DNA from: Tubulanus polymorphus
Taxonomy: Eukaryota; Animalia; Nemertea
Assembly (NCBI RefSeq): GCF_964204645.1
Contig: NC_134029.1
Coordinates: 1,054,001 to 1,118,000, forward strand
Reading direction: 5' to 3'
Length of the DNA stretch: 64,000 bases
Positions 496 through 64,000 of this stretch are shown piece by piece; positions within the stretch are counted from its first letter, which is position 1, and each line of letters opens with the position of its first letter. The notes below the pieces were generated by a model, which did no database searches, was not told where the DNA came from, and saw only the letters and a program-made list of their open reading frames with translations. The position numbers and the translations under genes are program-made.

Positions 496-823
496 ATGTG
501 AATTACCGTGTTCAGAAGTGTGTCTAGTCAGTATGGTGACCAGTCAGATGTAGTGACCAGTCAGGTGTAGTGACTGATTGACAAAATGCTCCATTCGCCA
601 TAAACAATAGCTGAGATGGGAATGGCTGGAATGTCTCAATTTCTCGAAGGGGTCTTTTGGGAAACTAGAACATGAACAGATTCTCCGAAATATGATTAAA
701 TAAACTTAAGAATATAATATCTGATAATGTTCTTATCTATGAATTTATTTGGTAATCATAAATTCAAATTCTCCACATAGATTTATCATATATATATTTT
801 TTATCGTCTATGATTTATTTCAG

Positions 824-3800
824 ATATCGATTCATAAATTCAATGCTAAACACGCTCAATTCAGAGTTCAACCGAGATACAAGGTCAAATCAGAAGGTGA
901 TAACGTAAGTATTCAATATTTATCCAAACCCTAATGATATTTAACAGTGGTTCCGTCGGTCGCTGGTTGGTACTGCGTGGTTGGTGCACGATAGTGTTGG
1001 ACATATTTGTGGTTGCCTAAAAAATTTACTTCGACCGAGAATTTACGAAGACGCGGAAATGATGATCTCAATATTGATATTTCATGAGTTCAGAGAAATC
1101 GTTTGGGTTTCTGTGTTTTGTCATTCAATCTTGAGCGATAAGAAAAAAAACCCCCAAATTTATATTTATTTCTTTAATCGTATGATAAAGGTGTTTATAT
1201 ATGAATCAGCGAGTCCAGGTTCCATAGTCGAAACCATTTTTTCAATTTTGTCTCCAATCACCTTATTCCAATTGATTTTGATCTGTACTGTGGATTCGGA
1301 CCCTTCGCCCATCAGTTGCACTGTCCAAAAATGATCTTAAATCGTAGTCTAATCATCATTGCCTATGTGCAACTAGAGTCTCTCTGGAGCTTCTGGGTTT
1401 CCACAACTATTGTCTCATGATTTCCCAGCCGCTATGTGGAGATCTTTCCAATGTCAGTGCTGTTGATAAAATGTCCATGAATTATTGATACATCGGACTC
1501 AGTAAATTCTAGGATCCAAGAATCTTCAGGGATCATTATAAATCGGGATTCGGACCAAGCAACCCGATTAGTGCTAGGCATGGAATCCCAAAATTGATTC
1601 ATATATTGTATTTTTCTGTTGTTTCTAGGTACAAATATATGATCAGATAGTGTTAGAAAGTGTGAAATCGGCTGGTCAATGTTTCCATGCTAGTATACCC
1701 TGGCAGATAGACCACTTTCACTACGGGTGAGTTCTCCACGACCTACTTCACTTCGAAAAACGATTTCAACAACTGAAACTAAACTATCATCCACGAATTC
1801 AACTATTTCAATTATCAATTATTTCGAGGGTTAGAAAAAAACGAACATTCAAGCCTCCGGGAGTGATAACATTTGACACTCACCGGCCAGGTAGCCCATC
1901 GAGAATTACCAGCTCAATTCGAGATACCTCAGTCAGTATCTATAGTACAGGGTGGGTTTCCATTGAATTATCAAAAATGTATATATCAATCTACTCGAAG
2001 AGGGAAAAATGTACAACTTATAAAAGCACAATAGTCGTAAAATTAGCTTCAGCTTCGTGCTTTCATTTCAGTTCTGAACTGAATCTAGGAATCGAACGAA
2101 CAGGATTCACTCTGATAAAGAGTTTTAAGCCGTTGCCGGGAGAACAAGAATTTCTACGGGTAAATATTCATCACTAGGCATAGGCCTAGTACTGACCTGA
2201 ATAAAGTATAACACAGCCATGGATTAGGTTTAAAACCAGTCTAAGACCATCTTAGTTCTATAGCTAATCTAGAAAATCAAGATCAGTCCTAAGAAGATTT
2301 AAGATGACTTTTGAACTTGAGCCACGATTGTGCGACTTGGTTCTGAGTTGTAGCAGTAAAACGGCAGGTTATAGAAATATATGTTAACCAAGTCCAATAA
2401 CTGGTGTGAGTTCAGTTCGTTCGTTTGAAGAGTCAGTGTTTTTTACTGTTCACAGAAATAGGATCAAATAACAATATCTGATATCTGATACTATTACCAG
2501 TAGTGAATAATGTCGTTTATCTGTTGTGTTGACTGTATGATGTATGTTTCTAGGGTGGCTCCGTAATACGGTTATTTCACCGTGAATTAGAAGCTTATCT
2601 CGTCACTGAAGGTTTATTCGATGATGCCGTTTTACAAGATGGTAATTATTTCATTACATTAAAATCCTTTTCCACCACGGGTTCCAGTACAACGAATAAT
2701 GTTGCAAAATCATCGAGAAGTTTCTGAAGATCAGAATTCTATTTTCAGTTCATCTGAGACTTCGTCCTATTGATCAGATCAATCGCCCTCAATCTCTGCT
2801 TCCATCTACGTCTGGTCTCACATACTGGCAGGTCGAGGCTGAAGACAATATTCTAAATGGTAAATTATTCGAAACATCAGATATGAAATTTATGAAAAGA
2901 TGAATCCAAAAGTGTTAGAAACCAATTGAAAAATATAGCTGCAAAGCAGCGATAACGGGTTTTCTGGATGCATGTGATCGAAAGGAAAAATTAATTACCG
3001 GGTATTCGATGGAAAAAATAAAATGAGATGATTTGGATATTATCGGAGCAATCCTCTTTTTGGTTGAATGGTTTAACCCCAGTATAGTCCCCGTGATTTG
3101 GAAATTCTCGGAGCCCTCCTTTATTTACTTACTAAATGACGTCACAAACTGTTATTTCGCCGGTGCTTGTTGTCTAACAATTCAATTCAATTCTTTATTT
3201 ACAGTAACCTAATAAGTAATTTTAAGTTTCAAATAGGATGGAAAGTACATTCAGACAATCTGTTGGTTCAGAGAGACCGTTATTACAGTATAAATTTATA
3301 CATTTCGTTTCGAAGCTGTCAGTTGTCGAATCTGAATGAAGATGAATTTTATTTGACGAAATCGGCGGAAATTATATAATAATAATAATCAACAGAATTT
3401 CAAGAGGGTTTTCGACGAAAGTCAGAAAACCCTAATGATATTCATCTTAAAAATCATCTTGTAAAATATCTGAAAGTGAAATATCTATAGAGACAGAGTT
3501 TATTGATATATGTATATCTGACTGTAGGTAATGTATTGAGATGGGGACAACAGATTCGGTTACGTCACATGGTCACTAGACAGTATCTATGCGTTAATGC
3601 TGATCACGATGTTGATTTGACGAATAATGAAAGAGATCCCAGAGCTGTTTTCAGACTTCATCCAGTAAAAAAGGTCTCCGAATCTTCATGTCAATTCTTC
3701 TCTTTATTTTTCATATGAACAGTTCTTGATGTATTTTCTGTTTAATTTCTCTATTCTAAGGAAGTTGATGAAATAAAGTTGGGAAGTTACGCTCGAATTG

Positions 3801-18894: not shown

Positions 18895-19994
18895 ACTGAG
18901 GAGAATCCGCAACTCATCCAGCTTCATAGCGTTTCGGTATTAAAATATTGAAAACGAACTGATTTTTAGGAGTCAAACTGAACCGAACTATCTGGAACTG
19001 GAGCGAGGTTCATGAAGTATATATACATATGCAAATTCAACTATTCGTGTCCCTCCCACCATCTATATTTGCATATGTACCAGTATTTGAAGGTTGTCTG
19101 TAGTTCATCTCAAAGATGACTCGATTATTATAGACTTTCACTTTAGCGAAGTCCATTTTGCTATCGCACATGAAACGTTCTTCATTTTATAAAAAATAAC
19201 TTCCGAACGAAGCTTAGTTTCTCTTCGGAACTTGAAAAACATTCAATGCAGTAATAAAATCTATCCCTATTGAATTTCATCGGAATGCGTTGCTTATTTA
19301 TCAATTTAGTAATTTATTTGTCTTTGAACTACATTTTGTTTCGGAAGAATACATGCACCGTCACGTATATTCATGCTTCACACACGTGCGCGCACATAAG
19401 ACTTATCATCCTCCCCCGCAGGGACTCGAACCTGATAGCGTCGAGATTGCCACGAGTCGTTTTTTAGTCATGCATAGTTTTAGTTTTGAAAATAATGTAT
19501 TATAGTCACAACAACGTAGTATGATGATGACAGTTTGTGTACCATTGCAATCGAATATAATAAAATCGCACATTTATTAAAAAAAATTAAAACTTAGCTT
19601 TATTCGCCGCAACTACGTTCAGTCAGGATAGCCGTAAACTGGAGCTGGTTGCTCGAAGTAGTTCCGTTAATAATTCCATGTTTGAAGTAAGTTTTGTGGA
19701 ACTCTGATATGAGCCCCTGTGGAATAAAAAATACCATTGGGATCCATGGGTGAAACCGATTGGTCAACACCAACGGCCATGAACCAGTTTCATAACTCTT
19801 AAATTCGATTTAATGTCTTCATTAATTCAGTTTATATTAAATCGATTTATATTAAATCGATTTAGGCCTTAGAGTTGTTAAATTAAACTTAACTCAACGA
19901 ATGACAAATTTCAAAATCATATTTATTCTCATACAACAATTATACGAAATGCCAGGAGTGCTCGAGGAATTATAATGTAAGCTCCTCAAACACG

Positions 19995-20179
19995 TGGACT
20001 TTCAAAAAACAACTAGTCCAACCACCATAGGCGTATAAACTATAAACTTTAAACAAGAGTTTATACGCCCATGGTCCAACCATAGACTCTAAAACCAAAA
20101 AGTCTATGGCCCAACCATGGACGCAATAGTCCATGGCCCCCGCACTAAAACCAGAGATAAACCTGGCCAAATACTCTGG
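19995..20179. other. Array of five consecutive stem-loops
   Basis: Inverted repeats at 19995-20020 (6 bp), 20025-20074 (17 bp, one mismatch), 20080-20109 (9 bp), 20115-20136 (8 bp) and 20151-20179. The first four are separated by 4-5-nt ACCA/YCCAA linkers. Confidence 0.75.
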
Positions 20180-20527
20180 AAAGCGTTGGATTAAGTAATC
20201 AATCTTATAATAATTTACATTTTTTACATCATTTTATTTTCACATATCAATTTATTAACTTTTAGCTTATTTTTCACAAATTTCAATAGTAATTTTATTT
20301 CTATTACTATATATGTAATTGTGCTAACTTTAAAACCACAACAAAAGTTACATGTAAGGTATTTATCTAAGTCTTTATCTACGATACATTTCCACTACAG
20401 CTGATGATGCAATGATTTAAAGAAGATATCCTGTAATGACAAATATTTCATTTGGAATTTATCATAACAATTTCCATCAAAAATGAACTTACATTTCAAG
20501 TTTGCTGGGTTCAGTATCGGTTCTTTC

Positions 20528-20835
20528 TTTCTGCCTTTTTCAAAACATCTAGTATATCTATATTAGAAGATTAACTTTTTTCTGCCTATTTCAATATATC
20601 TAGATTTTGGATATCTATATTAGAAGATTAACTTTTTTTCTGCCTATTTGAATACATCTAGATTTTGGATATCTATATTACAAGGTTAACTTTTTTTTCT
20701 GCCTATTTGAATACATCTAGATTTTGGATATCTATATTACAAGGTTAACTTTTTTTCTGCCTATTTCAAAACATCTGGATTTTGGATATCTATATTGCAA
20801 GGTTAACTGTTTTCTGCCTATTTCAAATCATCTAG
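20528..20835. repeat. ~60-bp minisatellite, ~5 copies
   Basis: Unit TTTTTTCTGCCTATTTxAAxACATCTAGATTTTGGATATCTATATTAxAAGxTTAAC repeated in tandem. Confidence 0.9.
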
Positions 20836-22907
20836 CGTCTTAGTCTTCTAGATATCTAAAGCAATCCGTTAATTAGTAATCATACTAGCTACATTTTAAT
20901 TGTCAGTTGAATTCATCACTATTTGAATTCATCAGAAATTAAGATAGAAGCACATTTAAGTGCTAAATTAGAAATTCCCTTAAAGCCGAATTGCTATATA
21001 ATTTTTATTTCCCTTTTACAGTACACTGTGTATAAGGACCGAAAGACCTTGTTATGACTGGACCTCCCTGGTGCGGTGCAAGTCATGATGCTTGAATATA
21101 GATTGAAGGAGAGGGGTTAGTAAAAGATAGCTATTAGCAAGAGGAATAAGACCTAAGTTTAGGACATCCTGTCAAAATAAGGCTCTCAATCTGACATACA
21201 CAGTGAAATTGAAATATTCCCCCTTCCAAATTCAGGAATGTATTTTGCACAGATTTGTTTTATCTCCCTTCGATCGGAGGTAAATCTGCGTTAAATGATT
21301 TTGGCAATATGTATCAAAACTAATACAGCTGTATGACAACACAATAGGTTCACTTTAGATACAGATAAATAAATGTGCTCAGATACACATGTATCAGCTT
21401 TAAATGTCCATGGACCTGAATTAAAAGATAATTTTACATAACATATTGAATTTACCTTAATCGTAGATATCTAAGTAATACGTTAATGAGTAAATCATCT
21501 TAGATTCTAATTGTCAGTTAAACAATATCTATTATGCGTCACTTGACACACAGTAATGCTTTTATTTGAATCAGTTAGGTTTTGGTAAATTTTGGCAATA
21601 TTGAAGCGCACGAACAGTCGCGGTAAGCACGGCAGTTGGAGATGTAAATACTGATCAGTCGATGAGACTGATTCATATATCAGCTATGTTTAAATTTTTA
21701 GTTTAATGACATTTATATTATGGACCTGTATTATGTACCGTATAAATAGTTTTTGATCATAGAAATATTGAATTCATCTATTATTGAATATCAAATTTTT
21801 ACATCTACAAATCAGCAAATAGTTAATATTTGTACATCAACACTGGTCTAACGTTATGTTCTATGTTTCCTAACTATGTGATATCTACACGGACAAATAG
21901 CCACAGTTGACTATGTTTAACTATGGTAAGTTGGAAGATTAAACTCACAATTCATGTTGAAACTATATCTCAGTTTAGGTTAACTCAACAGACCTATGAG
22001 TCCAAACAAGGCACTCAACACAACCATTTACCCCTAGTGACAAACCTAACTTGTCTTATCTATCGACCAAGGATCGAAGACCAAAATCGTGCATTAATGG
22101 AGCTTAGCTTTTATTCGACTCTCACATTGCATAAACATTATCAAATAGTTTCCTCGAGAACACTATATCATCCATCAGACTGGTTTGAAAAAGGTGATAA
22201 GCAAAAAAATCAATACTTTACTACAGAAGTCCACTATTGTCTTCGCCGCTCCTGGATCTCAGTGTTTATAACATGCACTATTATCTATGCTGCTCCTAAT
22301 AAGATACACTATTGTCTTTGCTGCTTTTAAAACAGTGTTTATCCTGAATCAGTGTTCATGAGATAATCCATTAGCTTTGTCGCTTGAATCAGTGTTTATA
22401 AGATTCACTATTGTCTCTGCTGCTCCTGATATTTAATGTTTTATAGAAATCAACCGCCGATTGTAGAAGAATCCATCATTGAGTGATTAATCCGTTGCTG
22501 GTTCCTCAACTTTTCATCTGGGCTTCTGCAGTTTCCATCAGCAAATGGGTCGATCAGTATTCATCTACTTGTAAGTGTCTTCTTCAGGCCAATTTTTCCG
22601 AGATGTAGTTTGGCTGAAACAAAGTGAAGAAAGCAAAACATTTCAGACAGATTTATCATAATTTACATGTCATTTAAAATTACAAGCCACCCTGTTTTTC
22701 ACAAAGTAAAATTCATTGACGTCAATTGCTGATTTAAACCCCAATAATTAATTGCAGTAGTAGGACTAGTTCATCACTGTTTAAGACTAGTGAAGATAAA
22801 AGCCATGTGGACCGGTAAATAGATTTTGATGATAGCCACTTATGAAATGATGTTCATATGAGGACTGAAATTTCTATATACAGGTAATTTCATGTATATC
22901 AATTTAC

Positions 22908-24244
22908 CTTTAAAGATTGCTGGGTTCAGTTCTGGTCTTTTCTGTGCACCGTTCCAGTTTGTAGATTTTGGACGAGTAGTTGATCTCAAGCTGGGTTTTT
23001 TCTTATAGTTGAAATTCAGCTGCAATGATTAAAAGAAGATATCCAGTAATGACAAAATATTTAATTTAGAATTTATCATAATAATTTCCATAAAAAATCG
23101 ACTTACATTTCAAGTTTGCTGGGTTCAGTATCGGTTAGAACAATTGGTTGATGCATTTGATTCAAGCTTGGATTGTTCATTGGGCGGAGCTTATCTGTAG
23201 ATATTTGATGAGTCGTTGATTTAAAGCTGGGCAGTTAGATAGGATTTAGCTGAAATGAGCAAACAAAGATATCCTGTAATGACAAAATATTTCATTTAGA
23301 ATTTATCGACATAAATCCACATATATCCAGTTACCTTTTATGCTTGGGTCGTTATCAGCGATTATCTTATTAGTTTGTTAGTTAGTTGGCCTCATCTGTG
23401 CGCTGTTCCAGTTGGTCAATTTTGGAAGATTAGTTGATCTCAAGCTGGGTTTTTCTCATAGTTGAAATTTAGCTGCAATGATTAAAAGAAGATATCCTGT
23501 AATTACAAAATATTTCATTTAGAATTTATTGAAATAATTTCATGTATATTAAGTTACCTTTAATGATTGCTTGGTCCATAATCGGCGTGGATCATCTTAA
23601 GTTTGTTTGTTGATAAATTGGATTCTAGTTGGCCTCATCTGTGCACTGTTCCAGTTGGTCGATTTTGGATGAGTAGTTGATCTCAAGCTGGGTTTTTTCT
23701 TATAGTTGAAATTTAGCTGCAATGATTAAAAGAAGATATCCTGTAATGAAAAAATATTTCATTTAGAATTTATCGAAATAATTCCATGTATATCAAGTTA
23801 CCTTTAATGATTGCTTGGTTATCGGGGATTATCCTATTAGTTGGTTAGTTAGTTGGCCTCATCTGTGCCCTGTTCCAGTTGGTCGATTTTGGACGAGTAG
23901 TTGATCTCAAACTGGGTTTTTCTCATTGTTGAAATTTAGCTGCAATGATTAAAAGAAGATATCCTGTAATGACAAAATATTTCATTTAGAATTTATCGAA
24001 ATAATTCCATGTATATCAAGTTACCTTTAATGATTGCTTGGTTATCGGGGATTATCCTATTAGTTGGTTAGTTAGTTGGCCTCATCTGTGCCCTGTTCCA
24101 GTTGGTCGATTTTGGAGTAGTTGATCTCAAGCTGGGTTTTTTTCTTATAGTTGAAATTTAGCTGCAATGATTAAAAGAAGATATCCTGTAATGACAAAAT
24201 ATTTCATTTAGAATTTATCATAATAATTTCCATAAATAATATAC
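22908..24244 (-). repeat. Tandem array of ~220-245-bp exon+intron modules (probable spliced non-coding RNA or decayed repeat-protein gene)
   Basis: Six homologous 83-87-nt minus-strand GT..AG segments lie at 23020-23106, 23250-23334, 23473-23557, 23717-23801, 23940-24024 and 24162-24244. They are separated by related 112-159-nt exon-like blocks. Related copies occur at ~20400-20522 and ~24870-25030. Confidence 0.85.
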
Positions 24245-24319
24245 CTAGAATAGCCTACTCGGTTATATTCGTAACACCGAACAAATTATAAGCGAACATA
24301 CGATACCTAGTCAAATGAA

Positions 24320-24495
24320 ATGCTCGCCATTTTGTTTTGGGTTCCACATTGGGTTTTCCCAATGGGCTTTCCCAATTACATCAGAAATTCCCGGAATTTC
24401 CAACAAACAGCCAATCACATTCAATGTAGCTCAGGTAATGAGGTCAACTCAGATAAACAGAAGCGAGAAAATTTAGGGGGTTTATAAAGTGAGGA
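24320..24495. promoter_or_regulatory. Candidate bidirectional promoter with clustered NF-kB-like sites
   Basis: GGGTTTTCCC 24351-24360, GGGCTTTCCC 24364-24373, GAAATTCCC/GGAATTTCC 24384-24401, CCAAT 24411, TATAAA 24483-24488 (+), YY1-like CGCCATTTT ~24325. Confidence 0.45.
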
Positions 24496-25581
24496 CCCGT
24501 AGGTCGAAAAGTACATCGAGATGAGTCGCACAAAAAACGGCAACACTTCCAGGTAGGATTGAACTTTTATATCTTTCAATTCCAAGTATGCAAATTCTCA
24601 TGTATGAAAACGTGCCATTACTTAGTGCTAAAAAGCAGGGTTTTTACGTGTTTTTCAAGAATAATTCCCCTAAAAATAACTTGATCACTATGAAATTTTG
24701 TGGGCTCGAGAACTCATTATAAGCCAAACAATGACACCAAAAATCAACACTATTGGTTCAACAGCCAATGTTTGTGCCTTGTTGACACACCGGTACTCTA
24801 TTCATTTTCAATGAAAACTGCTTCTTCAGACCATTTGCATAGGCGAACCTACGGTTCACCAAAAATCAACTCACATTTCACGTTTGCTGGGTTTAGTATC
24901 GGTTAAAATGTTCTAAGTTCGTATCAAATATCAAATTACCTTTTATGATGGCTGGGTTCATTATCGGAGGATCTCCTAAGTTGGTTGGTTGAGTTTCATC
25001 CAAATTGGACCCTTCTGTGCACTGTCCTCTAATCGGCAGATCTTAGTTGATGAGCTCGCGTTTGACTTTTGAGTTGGTGTCCCTTACGATCGTGACACAC
25101 CTGCCAGGAGCGAAACAGGCGGAAATCGAAGTACAGATATAGTTGTGTGATCGTCAGTCGAATCTACATCATTTTTTTTCGATAATTTTACAATATTTGG
25201 TCTTTTTTTTCATATAAGTAGTCCGAAAGTTTACAAGGATGAAGATAATTTTGTCTAATTTTTTTTTGGAAATCGAAGTACAGATATAGTTGCGTGATCG
25301 TCGGTCGATTTTACTTAATCTTTTTTCAAAATCGAAGTACTTCTTTGTCTTCTTGGGTGTCGTCGAAGCTGAAATTGAGTATAAGAAAAAACATTTTGTA
25401 GTCACACATTTCTTCATCATTAATCCTAATTTATATGTGAATCAACTTAACTTTCAAGATTGCGGAGTTCACTATTCTTTTTTCGGCATCTTCTGTAGTC
25501 GCCTTCTACCATCTTCTTCTTCTTCAACTTCTTGGGAGTCCTGAAATGAAAAAAAAGAGAAGAGCGATGAAAACCTGGTAC

Positions 25582-26357
25582 GGAACAAAACTAATGTTCG
25601 AAAGCTTTTCAGCTCTCCGTCGCCGGTCACATGCCGAGAACACCAGACAAAGAGCCAGCCAGGAATATACTGCCCTCTACACGCCCTCACACAGAACGCG
25701 AAAACTAGGATGACGACGCCTCACATTCCCCATCTAACTGCAGGATGTACTGGGCGACATCAGTAACGGACACACCCGTAAAATTGCACGAAACACAAAT
25801 AGCGCAGTACAACCAGCTTGACCGGGTTGAGATTCAGGATCTCAACTAGCACTCAAAAGCGTGACAAGAGACTTCATCCACTGACCGAGGTTGTCACAAG
25901 GACACAATGAAACTAGCACTCACAAGCCGACGAGAGACTTCATCCACTGACCGAGGTTGTCACAAGGACACAATGAAAACTAGCACTCAAACTAGAAATC
26001 AAAGAGCGTGACAGTAGAATCATCCCTCAGCCGACTCAGAATACCAGAAACAAAGAGCGTGACAGTAGAATCATCCCTTATCCGGGCGGTCACAAGGACA
26101 CAATGAATGCTAGTAGCGTGACAATCCAGTATAACCGCTCCATTTGTATCCCGTGCAATCTCACAGATATGCCCGTCATTGACATCACTCAGCACACTTT
26201 GTAGATAGGTGGGGGCAGTGAGGCCTCGTCATCCTGGTTTTCGTGTTCCGTATGAGGGCGCGTAGAGGGCAGAATTTCCTGACCGACTCTTTGTCTGACA
26301 TCCTCGACACGTGACCGGCGAAGGAGAGCTGATGCTTTCGGACATAGGTTTTGTTCC
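25582..26357 (-). ncRNA. Long inverted repeat (arms 25582-25820 and 26122-26357, ~300-bp loop); candidate hairpin RNA
   Basis: The reverse complement of 26122-26357 aligns end to end with 25582-25820 at roughly 75-80% identity. Most transition differences would form G:U pairs in a minus-strand transcript. The repeat itself is certain; the RNA function is inferred. Confidence 0.65.
26122..26357 (-). mobile_element. Degenerate fragment of a non-LTR retrotransposon (RTE/L2-like) ORF2 C-terminus; second copy inverted at 25582-25820
   Basis: Minus-strand translation YVRKHQLSFAGHVSRMSDKESVRK, then after frameshifts RP..PTYLQSVLSDV..EIARD..KW. This resembles the RxxRLRW/FAGHVxRM...GRP..T...AxDRxxW motif at the end of LINE reverse transcriptase ORFs. 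Confidence 0.6.
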
Positions 26358-26699
26358 AGCAAACGTTGAAATTCGACAGAGAAATCGGCCCTGAAAAATA
26401 AAACGGGTTAGAACCTGCAAAAAAGAACGGGTTAATAAACACGGAACAGTACAGGACAGCACAGAGACGAACAGTAACACATAAAACATAAAGACGTCGT
26501 TCCTCAGGAAGCAGGAACAGGAGCAGGAGCGGGAGCGCAGCGAAAATCGCCAGGAGGAGAATCCACGGTAGCATGTTCACAGTGTGAGTAAGCTGAGGTG
26601 AATGGTCTATGCTTGTGTACACCGTGGTCAGCCGGTGACGTATTCAATAGCCCGTATAAATGATATCGACAACTCTTGAAAAGCCGCAATTGTGTCTCT

Positions 26700-26925
26700 G
26701 TTGAATGGATTTACATTGAGAGCTTATATAGAAGGTTCCACTGGGTTGAATACGCGCCAGTGTAGCCAGCTATACAATATCGTGGAACTTTATTAAGGCC
26801 ATAAAATAAATTACTTGATTCCCAACAGCTCCCCTATCCGAATTTAGCCGCCGCCTGGCAAAAAAACGTGTAGTTCACACCATGCACGTGGAAAGTGCTA
26901 TTTGAGTCATTAGGGAAAACCCCGG
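26700..26925 (-). promoter_or_regulatory. Candidate Pol II promoter (TATA, NF-kB-like, AP-1, E-box)
   Basis: Minus-strand CTATATAA at 26724-26731 with an Inr-like CCATTC ~20-25 nt downstream. GGGAAAACCC at 26913-26922, TGAGTCA at 26903-26909, CACGTG at 26885-26890. Confidence 0.45.
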
Positions 26926-27115
26926 CACTACCATCTCGTGATTAATCATCATTCATACGGTTATCACGGAGATCCCGGATTTCAATTAAAAAACTTCTTG
27001 ATTCAATTAGGGAAGTGTGTAATGAGACACTGTGACTTCCCTGATTCCATTGAGGCCGGGCTGTTTTTAATTACTTGAAGCATCCTCCGAAATTCTGCCA
27101 AAAACTTTATGATTG

Positions 27116-27225
27116 TACGGAAGCCCCTAGGTGACATACGAGAAAATTTTTTCACAATTTCGACTTATTATGTCGAAATTCGACTGTGAAAAAATTTTCT
27201 CGTATGTCACCTAGGGGCTTCCGTA
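27116..27225. mobile_element. MITE with ~40-bp TIRs and 6-bp TSD (TGATTG)
   Basis: TACGGAAGCCCCTAGGTGACATACGAGAAAATTTTTTCACA ... TGTGAAAAAATTTTCTCGTATGTCACCTAGGGGCTTCCGTA, flanked by TGATTG on both sides. Confidence 0.9.
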
Positions 27226-27288
27226 TGATTGCCATTCATAATTAATTTGAAAAAGCACATTTTTTTCTTAAATTTTGATACCGGTACT

Positions 27289-27426
27289 TACGAAAGCCTC
27301 TAGGTGACATGTACGAGATAATTTTTTCACAATTTCGACTTATTATGTCAAATTTCGACATTCTTACTTTCATAATAAGTCGAAATTGTGAAAAAAATTA
27401 TCTCATGTCACCTAGGGGCTTCAGTA
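27289..27426. mobile_element. Second, more diverged copy of the same MITE family
   Basis: TACGAAAGCCTCTAGGTGACAT ... ATGTCACCTAGGGGCTTCAGTA; no clear TSD. Confidence 0.8.
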
Positions 27427-28187
27427 CTGGATTTAACGGTACATCATCGTGTAAATTTAGGAAAGTCCATACTAAGAATATCGTTTCTTGTTATCAATGC
27501 AGTGCCTATAATCGCGTATATTGTATTACAAGCTTGATTTTCGTGTAAATTATGTCATAACTGTTTGTATTGTATTGCTACGATATAAAGTCTAATTATT
27601 CTGTGATTGAAATGATTATTATGAATATGATATTCCTAAATAACTTGCACAGACATATACTTTATAGAAATAAATCATGCGTGACCTCTGAACTCTGGTG
27701 GAATTTTCATTTCTGGTGGAATTTCTCCTCTCATCTCTGGTGGAATTTCTCCTGACCTAAATATAACCAACTCATCACAATTCAATTCAATTCATTTATG
27801 GATTTATTCATTTATTTATAAGTATTGTACAAAGTTTATATACAAGTTTTTACAATTGTCACTTCATCTTTAACAGACAATTAACAGACAGACACCAACA
27901 ACTCGGAATGAGTTCTCTCGTTAACTCATGCAATTCATTGAGTACTCTCATAATAACCGCAAAGACTCCAAGAGAGCTCTCCCACATCAGGTTTTCTTTT
28001 AACTCCGAGACTTCTCGTGAACTCAGAAGGACTCTTAAGAGAGATATTTAACTAAGCGAGAGTTCTTTAGTTTAAGTTCGTACAATTGTTGAATATTCTT
28101 GCGATGATGACAGATCACAGCCTGCACTTCGCTAGTAAAATGCATCGACATTGAAATGCAGCACTGATTCACACACAGCTGACTTGA

Positions 28188-59703: not shown

Positions 59704-60212
59704 TACCGGTAGTTTAGCTATGATTACTGAATAAACAGTAATTATTTAGACATCGATGCTTTCTCTCGGTTCAAATAACGAAACCCAGTAAAAATTACTG
59801 ATGCACATCGCGTCCAATAAAGCATCGAATATTCCGCAAAATAGTCTCCATTTTGATTCGTTGTTCGTAATTGAGGACATGAGGAAACCTTAGTCGCAAA
59901 TCACGTCGCGGCAATTGTGACGTCATTGATGCCTCGTTGTTTGTATCCAGGGATACCATAACAATACAGAAAAAACTGATGGTTTTAAAGCGGAAATATA
60001 GATAGCTAAAACGAAACAAACTGGTTCGGTGGTTCGGTCGTTCGGTTGAATCATGTTGTAGTATCTGTCTATAACTGGTGGTGGGCGGTTTATCGATATC
60101 TGATAATCATCATTTCAACATCAATATAATATTATTGATTGAATTATCCTTAGATTCACCTGTTATTGATAAAACCATCATCTTTTACTGTCGCTCATTT
60201 CACTACAATATC

Positions 60213-63200
60213 CTACCTCACTTTAACTCCTTACCCCCTGTCTACCTCACTCTCACTCCTTACCCCCTGTCTACCTCACTCTCCCTCACTCTCACTCCTT
60301 ACCCCCTGTCTACCTCACTCTCACTCACTCCCACTCCTTACCCCCTGTCTACCTCACTCTCACTCACTCCCACTCCTTACCCCCTGTCTACCTCACTCTC
60401 ACTCACTCTCACTCCTTACCCCCTGTCTACCTCACTCTCACTCTCACTCCTTACCCCCTGTCTCCCTCACTCTCACTCACTCTCACTCCTTACCCCCTGT
60501 CTACCTCACTCTCACTCCTTACCCCCTGTCTACCTCACTCTCACTCTCACTCCTTACCCCCTGTCTACCTCACTCTCACTCACTCTCACTCCTTACCCCC
60601 TGTCTACCTCACTCTCACTCCTTACCCCCTGTCTACCTCACTCTCACTCACTCCCACTCCTTACCCCCTGTCTACCTCACTCTCACTCACTCCCACTCCT
60701 TACCCCCTGTCTACCTCACTCTCACTCACTCTCACTCCTTACCCCCTGTCTACCTCACTCTCACTCTCACTCCTTACCCCCTGTCTCCCTCACTCTCCCT
60801 CACTCTCACTCCTTACCCCCTGTCTACCTCACTCTCACTCTCACTCCTTACCCCCTGTCTACCTCACTCTCACTCACTCTCACTCCTTACCCCCTGTCTA
60901 CCTCACTCTCACTCTCACTCCTTACCCCCTGTCTACCTCACTCTCACTCACTCCCACTCCTTACCCCCTGTCTACCTCACTCTCCCTCACTCTCACTCCT
61001 TACCCCCTGTCTACCTCACTCTCACTCCTAACCCCCTGTCTACCTCACTCTCCCTCACTCTCACTCCTTACCCCCTGTCTACCTCACTCTCACTCTCACT
61101 CCTTACCCCCTGTCTACCTCACTCTCACTCCTTACCCCCTGCCTACCTCACTCTCACTCCTTACCCCCTGTCTACCTCACTCTCACTCACTCTCACTCCT
61201 TACCCCCTGTCTACCTCACTCTCCCTCACTCTCACTCCTTACTCCCTGTCTACCTCACTCTCCCTCACTCTCACTCCTTACCCCCTGTCTACCTCACTCT
61301 CCCTCACTCTCACTCCTTACCCCCTGTCTACCTCACTCTCACTCACTCTCACTCCTTACCCCCTGTCTACCTCACTCTCCCTCACTCTCACTCCTTACCC
61401 CCTGTCTACCTCACTCTCACTCTCACTCCTTACCCCTGTCTACCTCACTCTCCCTCACTCTCACTCCTTACCCCCTGTCTACCTCACTCTCACTCACTCT
61501 CACTCCTTACCCCCTGTCTACCTCACTCTCCCTCACTCTCACTCCTTACCCCCTGTCTACCTCACTCTCCCTCACTCTCACTCCTTACTCCCTGTCTACC
61601 TCACTCTCACTCCTTACCCCCTGTCTACCTCACTCTCCCTCCTTACTCCCTGTCTACCTCACTCTCACTCTCACTCCTTACCCCCTGTCTACCTCACTCT
61701 CACTCCTTACCCCCTGTCTACCTCACTCTCACTCACTCTCACTCCTTACCCCCTGTCTACCTCACTCTCCCTCACTCTCACTCCTTACTCCCTGTCTACC
61801 TCACTCTCACTCCTTACCCCCTGTCTACCTCACTCTCCCTCACTCTCACTCCTTACCCCCTGTCTACCTCACTCTCCCTCACTCTCACTCCTTACCCCCT
61901 GTCTACCTCACTCTCACTCACTCTCACTCCTTACTCCCTGTCTACCTCACTCTCCCTCACTCTCACTCCTTACCCCCTGTCTACCTCACTCTCACTCCTT
62001 ACCCCCTGTCTCCCTCACTCTCCCTCACTCTCACTCCTTACCCCCTGTCTACCTCACTCTCACTCACTCTCACTCCTTACCCCCTGTCTACCTCACTCTC
62101 CCTCACTCTCACTCCTTACCCCCTGTCTACCTCACTCTCCCTCACTCTCACTCCTTACCCCCTGTCTACCTCACTCTCACTCACTCTCACTCCTTACCCC
62201 CTGTCTACCTCACTCTCCCTCACTCTCACTCCTTACCCCCTGTCTACCTCACTCTCACTCACTCTCACTCCTTACCCCCTGTCTACCTCACTCTCCCTCA
62301 CTCTCACTCCTTACCCCCTGTCTACCTCACTCTCCCTCACTCTCACTCCTTACCCCCTGTCTACCTCACTCTCACTCACTCTCACTCCTTACCCCCTGTC
62401 TACCTCACTCTCCCTCACTCTCACTCCTTACCCCCTGTCTACCTCACTCTCACTCACTCTCACTCCTTACCCCCTGTCTACCTCACTCTCCCTCACTCTC
62501 ACTCCTTACCCCCTGTCTACCTCACTCTCACTCACTCTCACTCCTTACTCCCTGTCTACCTCACTCTCACTCACTCTCACTCCTTACCCCCTGTCTACCT
62601 CACTCTCCCTCACTCTCACTCCTTACCCCCTGTCTACCTCACTCTCCCTCACTCTCACTCCTTACCCCCTGTCTACCTCACTCTCACTCACTCTCACTCC
62701 TTACCCCCTGTCTACCTCACTCTCCCTCACTCTCACTCCTTACCCCCTGTCTACCTCACTCTCCCTCACTCTCACTCCTTACCCCCTGTCTACCTCACTC
62801 TCACTCACTCTCACTCCTTACCCCCTGTCTACCTCACTCTCACTCACTCCTTACCCCCTGTCTACCTCACTCTCCCTCACTCTCACTCCTTACCCCCTGT
62901 CTACCTCACTCTCTCTCACTCTCACTCCTTACCCCCTGTCTACCTCACTCTCACTCACTCTCACTCCTTACCCCCTGTCTACCTCACTCTCACTCACTCT
63001 CACTCCTTACCCCCTGTCTCCCTCACTCTCCCTCACTCTCACTCCTTACCCCCTGTCTACCTCACTCTCCCTCACTCTCACTCCTTACCCCCTGTCTACC
63101 TCACTCTCCCTCACTCTCACTCCTTACCCCCTGTCTACCTCACTCTCACTCACTCTCACTCCTTACCCCCTGTCTACCTCACTCTCTCTCACTCTCACTC

Positions 63201-63877
63201 CTTACCCCCTGTCTACCTCACTCTCACTCCTTACCCCCTGTCTACCTCACTCTCACTCACTCTCACTCCTTACCCCCTGTCTACCTCACTCTCCCTCACT
63301 CTCACTCCTTACCCCCTGTCTACCTCACTCTCCCTCACTCTCACTCCTTACTCCCTGTCTACCTCACTCTCACTCCTTACCCCCTGTCTACCTCACTCTC
63401 ACTCACTCTCACTCCTTACCCCCTGTCTACCTCACTCTCCCTCACTCTCACTCCTTACCCCCTGTCTACCTCACTCTCCCTCACTCTCACTCCTTACTCC
63501 CTGTCTACCTCACTCTCACTCCTACCCCCTGTCTACCTCACTCTCACTCACTCTCATCCTTACCCCCTGTCTACCTCACTCTCCCTCACTCTCACTCCTT
63601 ACCCCCTGTCTACCTCACTCTCTCTCACTCTCACTCCTTACCCCCTGTCTACCTCACTCTCACTCACTCTCACTCCTTACCCCCTGTCTACCTCACTCTC
63701 CCTCACTCTCACTCCTTACCCCCTGTCTACCTCACTCTCCCTCACTCTCACTCCTTACTCCCTGTCTACCTCACTCTCACTCCTTACCCCCTGTCTCCCT
63801 CACTCTCACTCCTTACCCCCTGTCTCCCTCACTCTCACTCCTTACCCCCTGTCTCCCTCACTCTCTACCCTACCCCG
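60213..63877. repeat. 3.6-kb C-rich minisatellite with 29/35/39-bp unit variants
   Basis: Core CTCACTCCTTACCCCCTGTCTACCTCACT plus optional CTCACT, CTCACTCACT or CTCCCTCACT; roughly 100 units. Confidence 0.97.
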
Positions 63878-64000
63878 GCACGGTTTAGGAAAAGGGCACC
63901 GACAAGGATCTGACTTGCCTTCAATGTCTTCTTGTAATAGCATGTTACCTTTTTTACATAGTAATATTATGTGTTCCTATGAGCAGTTTAGTTATTTATT

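Follow-up and report, generated by a model that had tools for sequence, protein, structure and literature searches.

The window analysed here, a 64,000-nt stretch of the Tubulanus polymorphus genome, contains a 776-bp module built of two inverted arms of ~238 bp each and a 301-bp centre (Table 1). GC content is 48% in the module and 32-40% in its surroundings. A repeat scan resolved the arm pair into three collinear inverted segments (25582-25605 with 26334-26357, 25609-25665 with 26276-26332, and 25667-25808 with 26134-26275), which are complementary at 75-88%, and found no further inverted repeat of 30 bp or more in 19800-25600. When the left arm was globally aligned with the reverse complement of the right arm, 181 of 236 positions matched (77%), with 3 gap columns and 52 substitutions. 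Written left/right, the substitutions comprise A/G 18, C/T 13, G/A 6, T/C 5, and 13 transversions. In a plus-strand RNA, an A/G or C/T difference puts A opposite C, whereas a minus-strand RNA has G opposite U at the same position. The transitions of the window copy thus include 31 that would pair as G:U in a minus-strand transcript and 11 that would do so in a plus-strand one (two-sided binomial p=0.0029).

These values agree closely with the first-pass annotation of this DNA, which had described inverted copies of ~240 bp, about 75-80% identical and with few indels, and had counted by hand 29 G:U differences, 11 A:C differences, and 8 transversions. The binomial test on G:U versus A:C transitions was its own proposal, as was the folding of both strands. 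The 776-nt minus strand has a minimum free energy of -451.1 kcal/mol (z -26) and the plus strand -341.5 kcal/mol (z -16), so that the predicted minus-strand fold is the better of the two by 110 kcal/mol. The predicted minus-strand duplex has 311 pairs involving 80% of the bases, and one in six of these pairs is G:U. Both the inverted repeat and its minus-strand G:U bias are confirmed.

The centre contains no inverted repeat at the DNA level, and the motifs it has in common are direct repeats. Its minus strand is nevertheless predicted to fold at -100.1 kcal/mol (z -3.2), with 3 of 500 dinucleotide shuffles as stable, a p-value that is optimistic because of the tandem repeats; the plus strand of the centre gives z +0.9. 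A search of the module against Rfam returned no match, and sub-threshold matches to miRNA families fell only on neighbouring perfect palindromes. The latter belong to a cluster of perfect and near-perfect short palindromes at 27113-27428 (41-nt arms at 100%, 26-nt arms at 100%) that has a MITE-like look. Elsewhere in the window, the plus strand has a 1240-aa "ORF" at 60166-63888 that is the translation of a tandem array of HSLSLLTPCLP-type units and matches no Pfam family; it is a satellite rather than a gene.

Table 1 Features of the hairpin module and of the repeat unit around it, in window coordinates
Feature	Coordinates	Strand	Basis and remarks
Full repeated unit, ~7 kb, mosaic, left part variable	19888..26857	-	Homology with other copies to 19888-19895 on the left and to 26857 on the right
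AATAAA, 34 nt before the left end of the unit	19922..19927	-	Read from the sequence
Tandem array, 58-bp units x 4.9, 93% matches	20523..20835	.	TRF
Tandem array, 223-bp units x 5.7	22941..24238	.	TRF; also in other copies
Core stretch (hairpin and near flanks), common to nearly all 30 fetched copies	25366..26857	-	BLAST of the window against 29 other copies
Left arm, 3' arm of the putative minus-strand hairpin	25582..25820	-	Repeat scan and arm-to-arm alignment
Centre ("loop"), 301 bp, slowest-changing part of the module	25821..26121	-	Short direct repeats: 66 bp x 2.2, 51 bp x 2, 20-25-nt motif x 3
Right arm, 5' arm of the putative minus-strand hairpin	26122..26357	-	Inverted copy of 25582-25820, 77% identity
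Open frame of 145 aa, or 128 aa if counted from the ATG at 26577; right flank into 5' arm	26185..26622	-	Orphan
TATA-like octamer, minus strand CTATATAA	26724..26731	-	Consensus match only; not a family feature

A dispersed and uniform repeat family

The 776 bp do not constitute "a gene" but a single copy of a repeat module whose copies are dispersed and highly uniform. We searched the window's own assembly (268 Mb, 77 contigs) and found that the module recurs at least 105-129 times at 96-99% identity. A 34-nt marker from the centre matched 105 places (61 forward and 44 reverse), a 35-nt marker from the right arm matched 125 places with up to 3 mismatches, and a 35-nt marker from the left arm matched 129; the reversed control of each marker matched none. 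The assembly search scored 40 full-length copies at 97-98% identity among 173 candidates. Among the places listed (100 of 125 for the right arm and 100 of 129 for the left), each right-arm place is paired with a left-arm place 599-724 bp off. All 12 large contigs carry copies, and on the six contigs of known length 48 of the 54 listed copies sit in the outer fifths. One copy (L004) lies 181,627 bases beyond the window. The single hairpin-RNA gene that had been proposed for this locus is therefore replaced by a family of dispersed, near-identical copies, each within a larger repeat.

The arm-marker spans fall at 698 bp for the main family, at 599-615 bp, and at 720-724 bp, and these differences indicate that sub-families with different centres exist. 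Examples with a longer or shorter centre, in which the main centre marker is missing, are found at C3:5616156-5616876 and C7:20029634-20030232. On contig C9, some copies contain the centre marker twice, 227-273 bp apart. A protein-level search also reached older relatives of the right side of the module, whose identity goes down to 54-70%. An RVT_1 search of the genome lists many reverse-transcriptase places, and judged by eye the best of these are mostly in the central parts of contigs, unlike the hairpin family.

The junction sequences on both sides of the hairpin are identical in all 29 other copies that we fetched, so the arms do not mark the ends of a mobile element. As every copy examined has the same flanks, a foldback element moving on its own was ruled out. 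Several copies share the window sequence leftward to ~19888, with both tandem arrays included. The 58-bp array has about five units in the window and extends over 1.5-3 kb in unit copies L031 and L039. Past both ends of the unit, the window differs from most copies, which share other sequence among themselves; the context is thus mosaic. In most of the copies L005-L029 the right end of the unit (26857) meets a run of T (of A on the minus strand), after which comes the shared sequence CTTAAATTCTAGAATAATTTATAAATTATACCGACCG..., which is absent in the window. The unit is thus usually joined there to another repeat. The ~7-kb repeat is apparently non-coding, and its spread looks DNA-based.

Divergence within the family rises outward from the centre. 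Median divergence from the family consensus is 0.66% for the centre and 1.3-1.7% for the arms; the right flank shows 2.9% near the module, and the far flanks show 4.3-4.9%, the flank values arising partly from two alternative flank versions. The 30 copies were picked by their similarity to the hairpin, which lowers the apparent divergence of the hairpin somewhat and does not explain the difference between centre and arms. Such a gradient is expected under selection and likewise under gene conversion centred on the palindrome.

Age of the wobble bias, possible origin of the arms, and sequencing runs

The strand-specific bias claimed for the window copy is a property of the whole family. Between the two arms of the 30-copy consensus there are 32 transitions that are G:U on the minus strand, 9 that are G:U on the plus strand, and 14 transversions (p=0.0004). 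Because the bias sits in the family consensus, it was fixed in the founder before amplification. Both transition classes contribute, A/G at 20:6 (p=0.009) and C/T at 12:3 (p=0.035), so the asymmetry concerns the minus strand over both arms rather than one arm or one type of mutation. Copies lie in both orientations (61/44), which means that no present-day strand effect from outside is behind the family-wide bias. Transcription-associated mutation over the whole unit was considered and rejected, as A exceeds T only within ~25500-26750 and the skew is reversed elsewhere.

Changes that arose after amplification are more symmetrical. At consensus Watson-Crick pairs, 29 transitions would give G:U on the minus strand and 19 on the plus strand (p=0.19), and the frequency spectra of the two kinds of variant in the arms are equal. 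The first-pass annotation had proposed looking for orthologous or paralogous loci with compensatory changes; the paralogous copies show a single compensatory double change. Counting the later variants on an RNAalifold structure gives 33:17 (p=0.03), a count that is partly circular because the structure was chosen to fit the sequences. Given the non-significant 29:19, the equal spectra, and the one compensatory change, present-day selection on pairing appears weak at best. The wobble bias alone is no proof of present-day function.

We then considered where the arms may have come from. In frames that are broken in both arms, the arms have an AGHV.RM / GR.R look that may resemble a LINE ORF2 C-terminal tail. 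A phmmer search of the translated right arm for RT-bearing LINE ORF2 proteins among 1.84 billion representatives gave 3 spurious matches (LIM repeats, repeat proteins), none with an RT domain. No LINE tail was found in the 300 kb examined, where a scan for AGHV-type motifs hit family copies only, and the fetched loci contain no long RT frames. Searches for a parent element by tblastx and blastn against the window and 12 ten-kb loci likewise returned family copies only. For a 29-nt arm segment reconstructed with mixed states, GCCGGTCACGTGCCGAGRATGCCAGACAA, the genome contains no match at up to 1 mismatch, and no solo arm copy usable as an outgroup was found among the listed 35-mer places (100 of 125; 100 of 129). 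As for a target homologous to the arms, none was found in searches that were saturated by the family itself, all 150 scored protein-level matches being family copies.

To look at the module in sequencing data, 3,601 nt of the window were compared at a 90% identity threshold with four runs, all of them contigs of unrecorded kind. The DNA-like run X2 contains the hairpin and the adjoining repeats at similar depth (~500-3,700). Two runs from 2014, X5 and X6, cover 25147-26719 with a depth of 67-150 over the hairpin, and the adjoining high-copy repeats are nearly absent from them (depth 0-3 over 24300-25146). Transcripts of the module would give this pattern in X5 and X6, whose kind is unrecorded; flank divergence at the 90% threshold could also produce it. 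Run X7, which we guessed to be RNA, has no match to the compared sequence. The differences between the run contigs and the window are mostly also present in the DNA-like X2 and thus reflect variation among copies, not RNA editing. Published 2014 data for Tubulanus polymorphus are cDNA (PMC4986456). The specimen behind those published data was Pacific and may be a different species.

The gene-like signals that had been called on the minus strand give weak independent evidence of strand. The TATA-like octamer put forward as a TATA box does exist in the window, and it occurs in only 2 of 30 copies; 3 more have a TATAAG variant, and the majority have GGAACCTCATAATGTA or similar. Similarly, a pyrimidine tract followed by CAG is present at ~26391, as claimed for the acceptor, and is a consensus match only. 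This motif falls within the minus-strand open frame 26185-26622. Splice sites were part of the same claim: splice-like motifs are in the sequence, no GT-AG spliced joint was seen, and the contigs of X5 and X6 are unspliced across 26300-26617.

Competing explanations

We tentatively favour a reading, at somewhat short of even confidence, in which a founder formed a minus-strand RNA hairpin whose pairing was maintained by wobble pairs as the palindrome in the DNA eroded; amplification followed. Perfect palindromes are unstable in DNA, and in engineered hairpin transgenes they are self-silencing. The founder would have been transcribed on the minus strand into a long hairpin of ~300 predicted pairs, and changes that preserve RNA pairing as wobble would have been tolerated in it while they broke the palindrome in the DNA. 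The likeliest product would be long double-stranded RNA for small-RNA production. After amplification, drift would largely govern today's copies, in which the module changes at a slower rate than the flanks; this slow change could come from gene conversion rather than from selection. We count in favour of the founder hairpin the 32:9 consensus, the advantage of the minus-strand fold of the module over the plus-strand one, the minus-only fold of the centre, the outward-rising divergence, and the depth pattern of X5 and X6. Neither an ADAR context nor a CpG context is present at the biased sites; for C-to-U at CpG, the figures are 12/32 against 26/96. Counted against it are the 29:19 of the later changes, the scarcity of the TATA-like octamer in the family, the absence of an arm target from our searches, and the empty run X7.

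The strongest rival, which we consider rather unlikely, is a passive DNA palindrome carried in a repeat with no RNA function. The bias would then be the frozen scar of a strand-specific mutation burst in the founder or of long-term strand-biased mutation, and the low divergence of centre and arms would reflect ectopic gene conversion initiated at the palindrome. Several observations fit this account: the amplified copies change symmetrically with the same spectra, divergence rises smoothly away from the palindrome centre as conversion tracts would give, the copies lie in distal chromosome regions with mosaic flanks, and the module is richer in GC than its surroundings. However, both transition classes are biased to the same strand without a deaminase or CpG context, the skew is local to the module and does not extend over the rest of the unit, and the centre beats its shuffles on the minus strand only. 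If the module is only a passive palindrome, it would still be a clean case of a strand-specific bias frozen into a repeat family before amplification.

A bolder version of the founder hairpin, in which the family is nature's equivalent of the engineered G:U hairpin, seems unlikely to us. Here the ~130 dispersed copies near chromosome ends would be copies of a dsRNA gene in which selection preserved a ~300-pair RNA duplex on one strand by way of wobble pairs as it eroded the DNA palindrome, and they would feed a small-RNA pathway, possibly one directed against the source element of the arms.

The first-pass annotation had itself offered an alternative, in which ADAR hyper-edited both arms of a minus-strand hairpin from A to I and the product was reverse transcribed and integrated. 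All 32 biased sites (20 from the 5' arm, 12 from the 3' arm) can be expressed formally as minus-strand A-to-G changes, and reading them in this way would imply an ancestral GC of ~45%, nearer the 32-40% of the genome. ADAR disfavours a G as 5' neighbour. A 5' G nevertheless precedes 9 of the 32 candidate sites, compared with 19 of 85 unedited A in A:U pairs (odds ratio 1.36), so there is no depletion. The hallmarks of a retrocopy are also missing: no poly(A) stands at the AATAAA-proximal end of the unit in 3 copies, no target-site duplications were seen, and the unit includes sequence upstream of the putative start. The lack of poly(A) together with this upstream sequence leaves retrocopying unsupported, and we regard the editing scenario as improbable.

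Slightly more improbable still is a small protein-coding gene family with the 128-aa frame as its product, the left arm being an antisense copy of its 3' part within the same transcript. This open frame, 26185-26622, stays open for ~140-190 aa in most of 150 copies. Its pN/pS is 0.63, against 0.97 and 1.19 in control frames (about 1), and 0 of 88 changes make a stop. The predicted protein has a hydrophobic N-terminus. However, the difference from the control frames is weak, and the in-frame length changes sit in a CTG/CTC-type repeat. No Pfam family matches the frame, and 5.8 billion proteins include no homologue, not even one called from this repeat family. As a gene the frame is doubtful. 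Finally, it is scarcely credible that the locus is a single-copy Pol II gene for a hairpin RNA, equipped with a TATA box and introns: the minus strand of the window copy does have the TATA-like octamer and motifs resembling splice sites, but the family is dispersed, the octamer is rare in it, and no spliced joint was seen.

Comparison with known systems

Several known systems resemble the module in part. Inverted-repeat dsRNA substrates of ADAR, such as inverted Alu pairs, also form a long intramolecular duplex from inverted copies of a repeat, whereas the differences between the arms here are in the DNA, are family-wide, and come without 5'-G depletion. Foldback and MITE-like transposons are multi-copy and, like the module, have long inverted repeats that match imperfectly, with short tandem repeats lying between them. 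In such elements the inverted repeats are termini flanked by target-site duplications and unrelated DNA. In the copies examined here, by contrast, homology continues past the arms in all 29 other copies, and neither target-site duplications nor a copy in a foreign context were seen.

Drosophila hpRNA genes, which are sources of endogenous siRNAs, are similar in that they contain a long inverted repeat from which one transcript could fold into a duplex of hundreds of bp. Some hpRNA loci are also repeated. The extended intramolecular RNA duplex of such genes has its counterpart in the predicted minus-strand fold (-451 kcal/mol). The discrete locus, whether single or a local cluster, does not: 105-129 copies lie on 12 contigs. 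The module further differs from hpRNA genes in that its more than 100 dispersed copies are embedded in a larger repeat and known from DNA sequence, and in that its bias is one-stranded. A full-text literature search turned up no description of one-strand wobble bias for natural hairpin loci or hpRNA genes. Should the module prove to be transcribed and diced, a nemertean would have a source of small RNAs of the hpRNA type, present in more than 100 amplified copies. We know of no hpRNA-type small-RNA source from the phylum Nemertea.

In mammals, expressed and structurally stable inverted duplicates occur genome-wide and have been proposed as sources of hairpin RNA (PMC5398296). Most of these duplicates are short loci unrelated to one another, whereas the module forms one amplified family with a strand-specific bias.

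For the wobble bias, the engineered G:U hairpin transgene is the nearest parallel in mechanism. In the G:U hpRNA transgenes of Zhang et al. 2022, C-to-T changes break the inverted repeat in the DNA while the RNA duplex stays active (PMC9263138), and in plants this design prevents self-silencing of the hairpin locus (PMC9263138). The likeness lies in a duplex that is kept by G:U pairs while the DNA inverted repeat is broken (PMC9263138). The two differ in that engineering alters all C residues in the sense arm alone, whereas here 32 wobble pairs are distributed over both arms of a natural animal repeat. If transcription and dicing of the module do take place, the family would also be a natural example of a principle that has so far been shown by engineering, namely that G:U pairs can preserve an RNA hairpin while the corresponding inverted repeat in the DNA, itself unstable or self-silencing, is broken.
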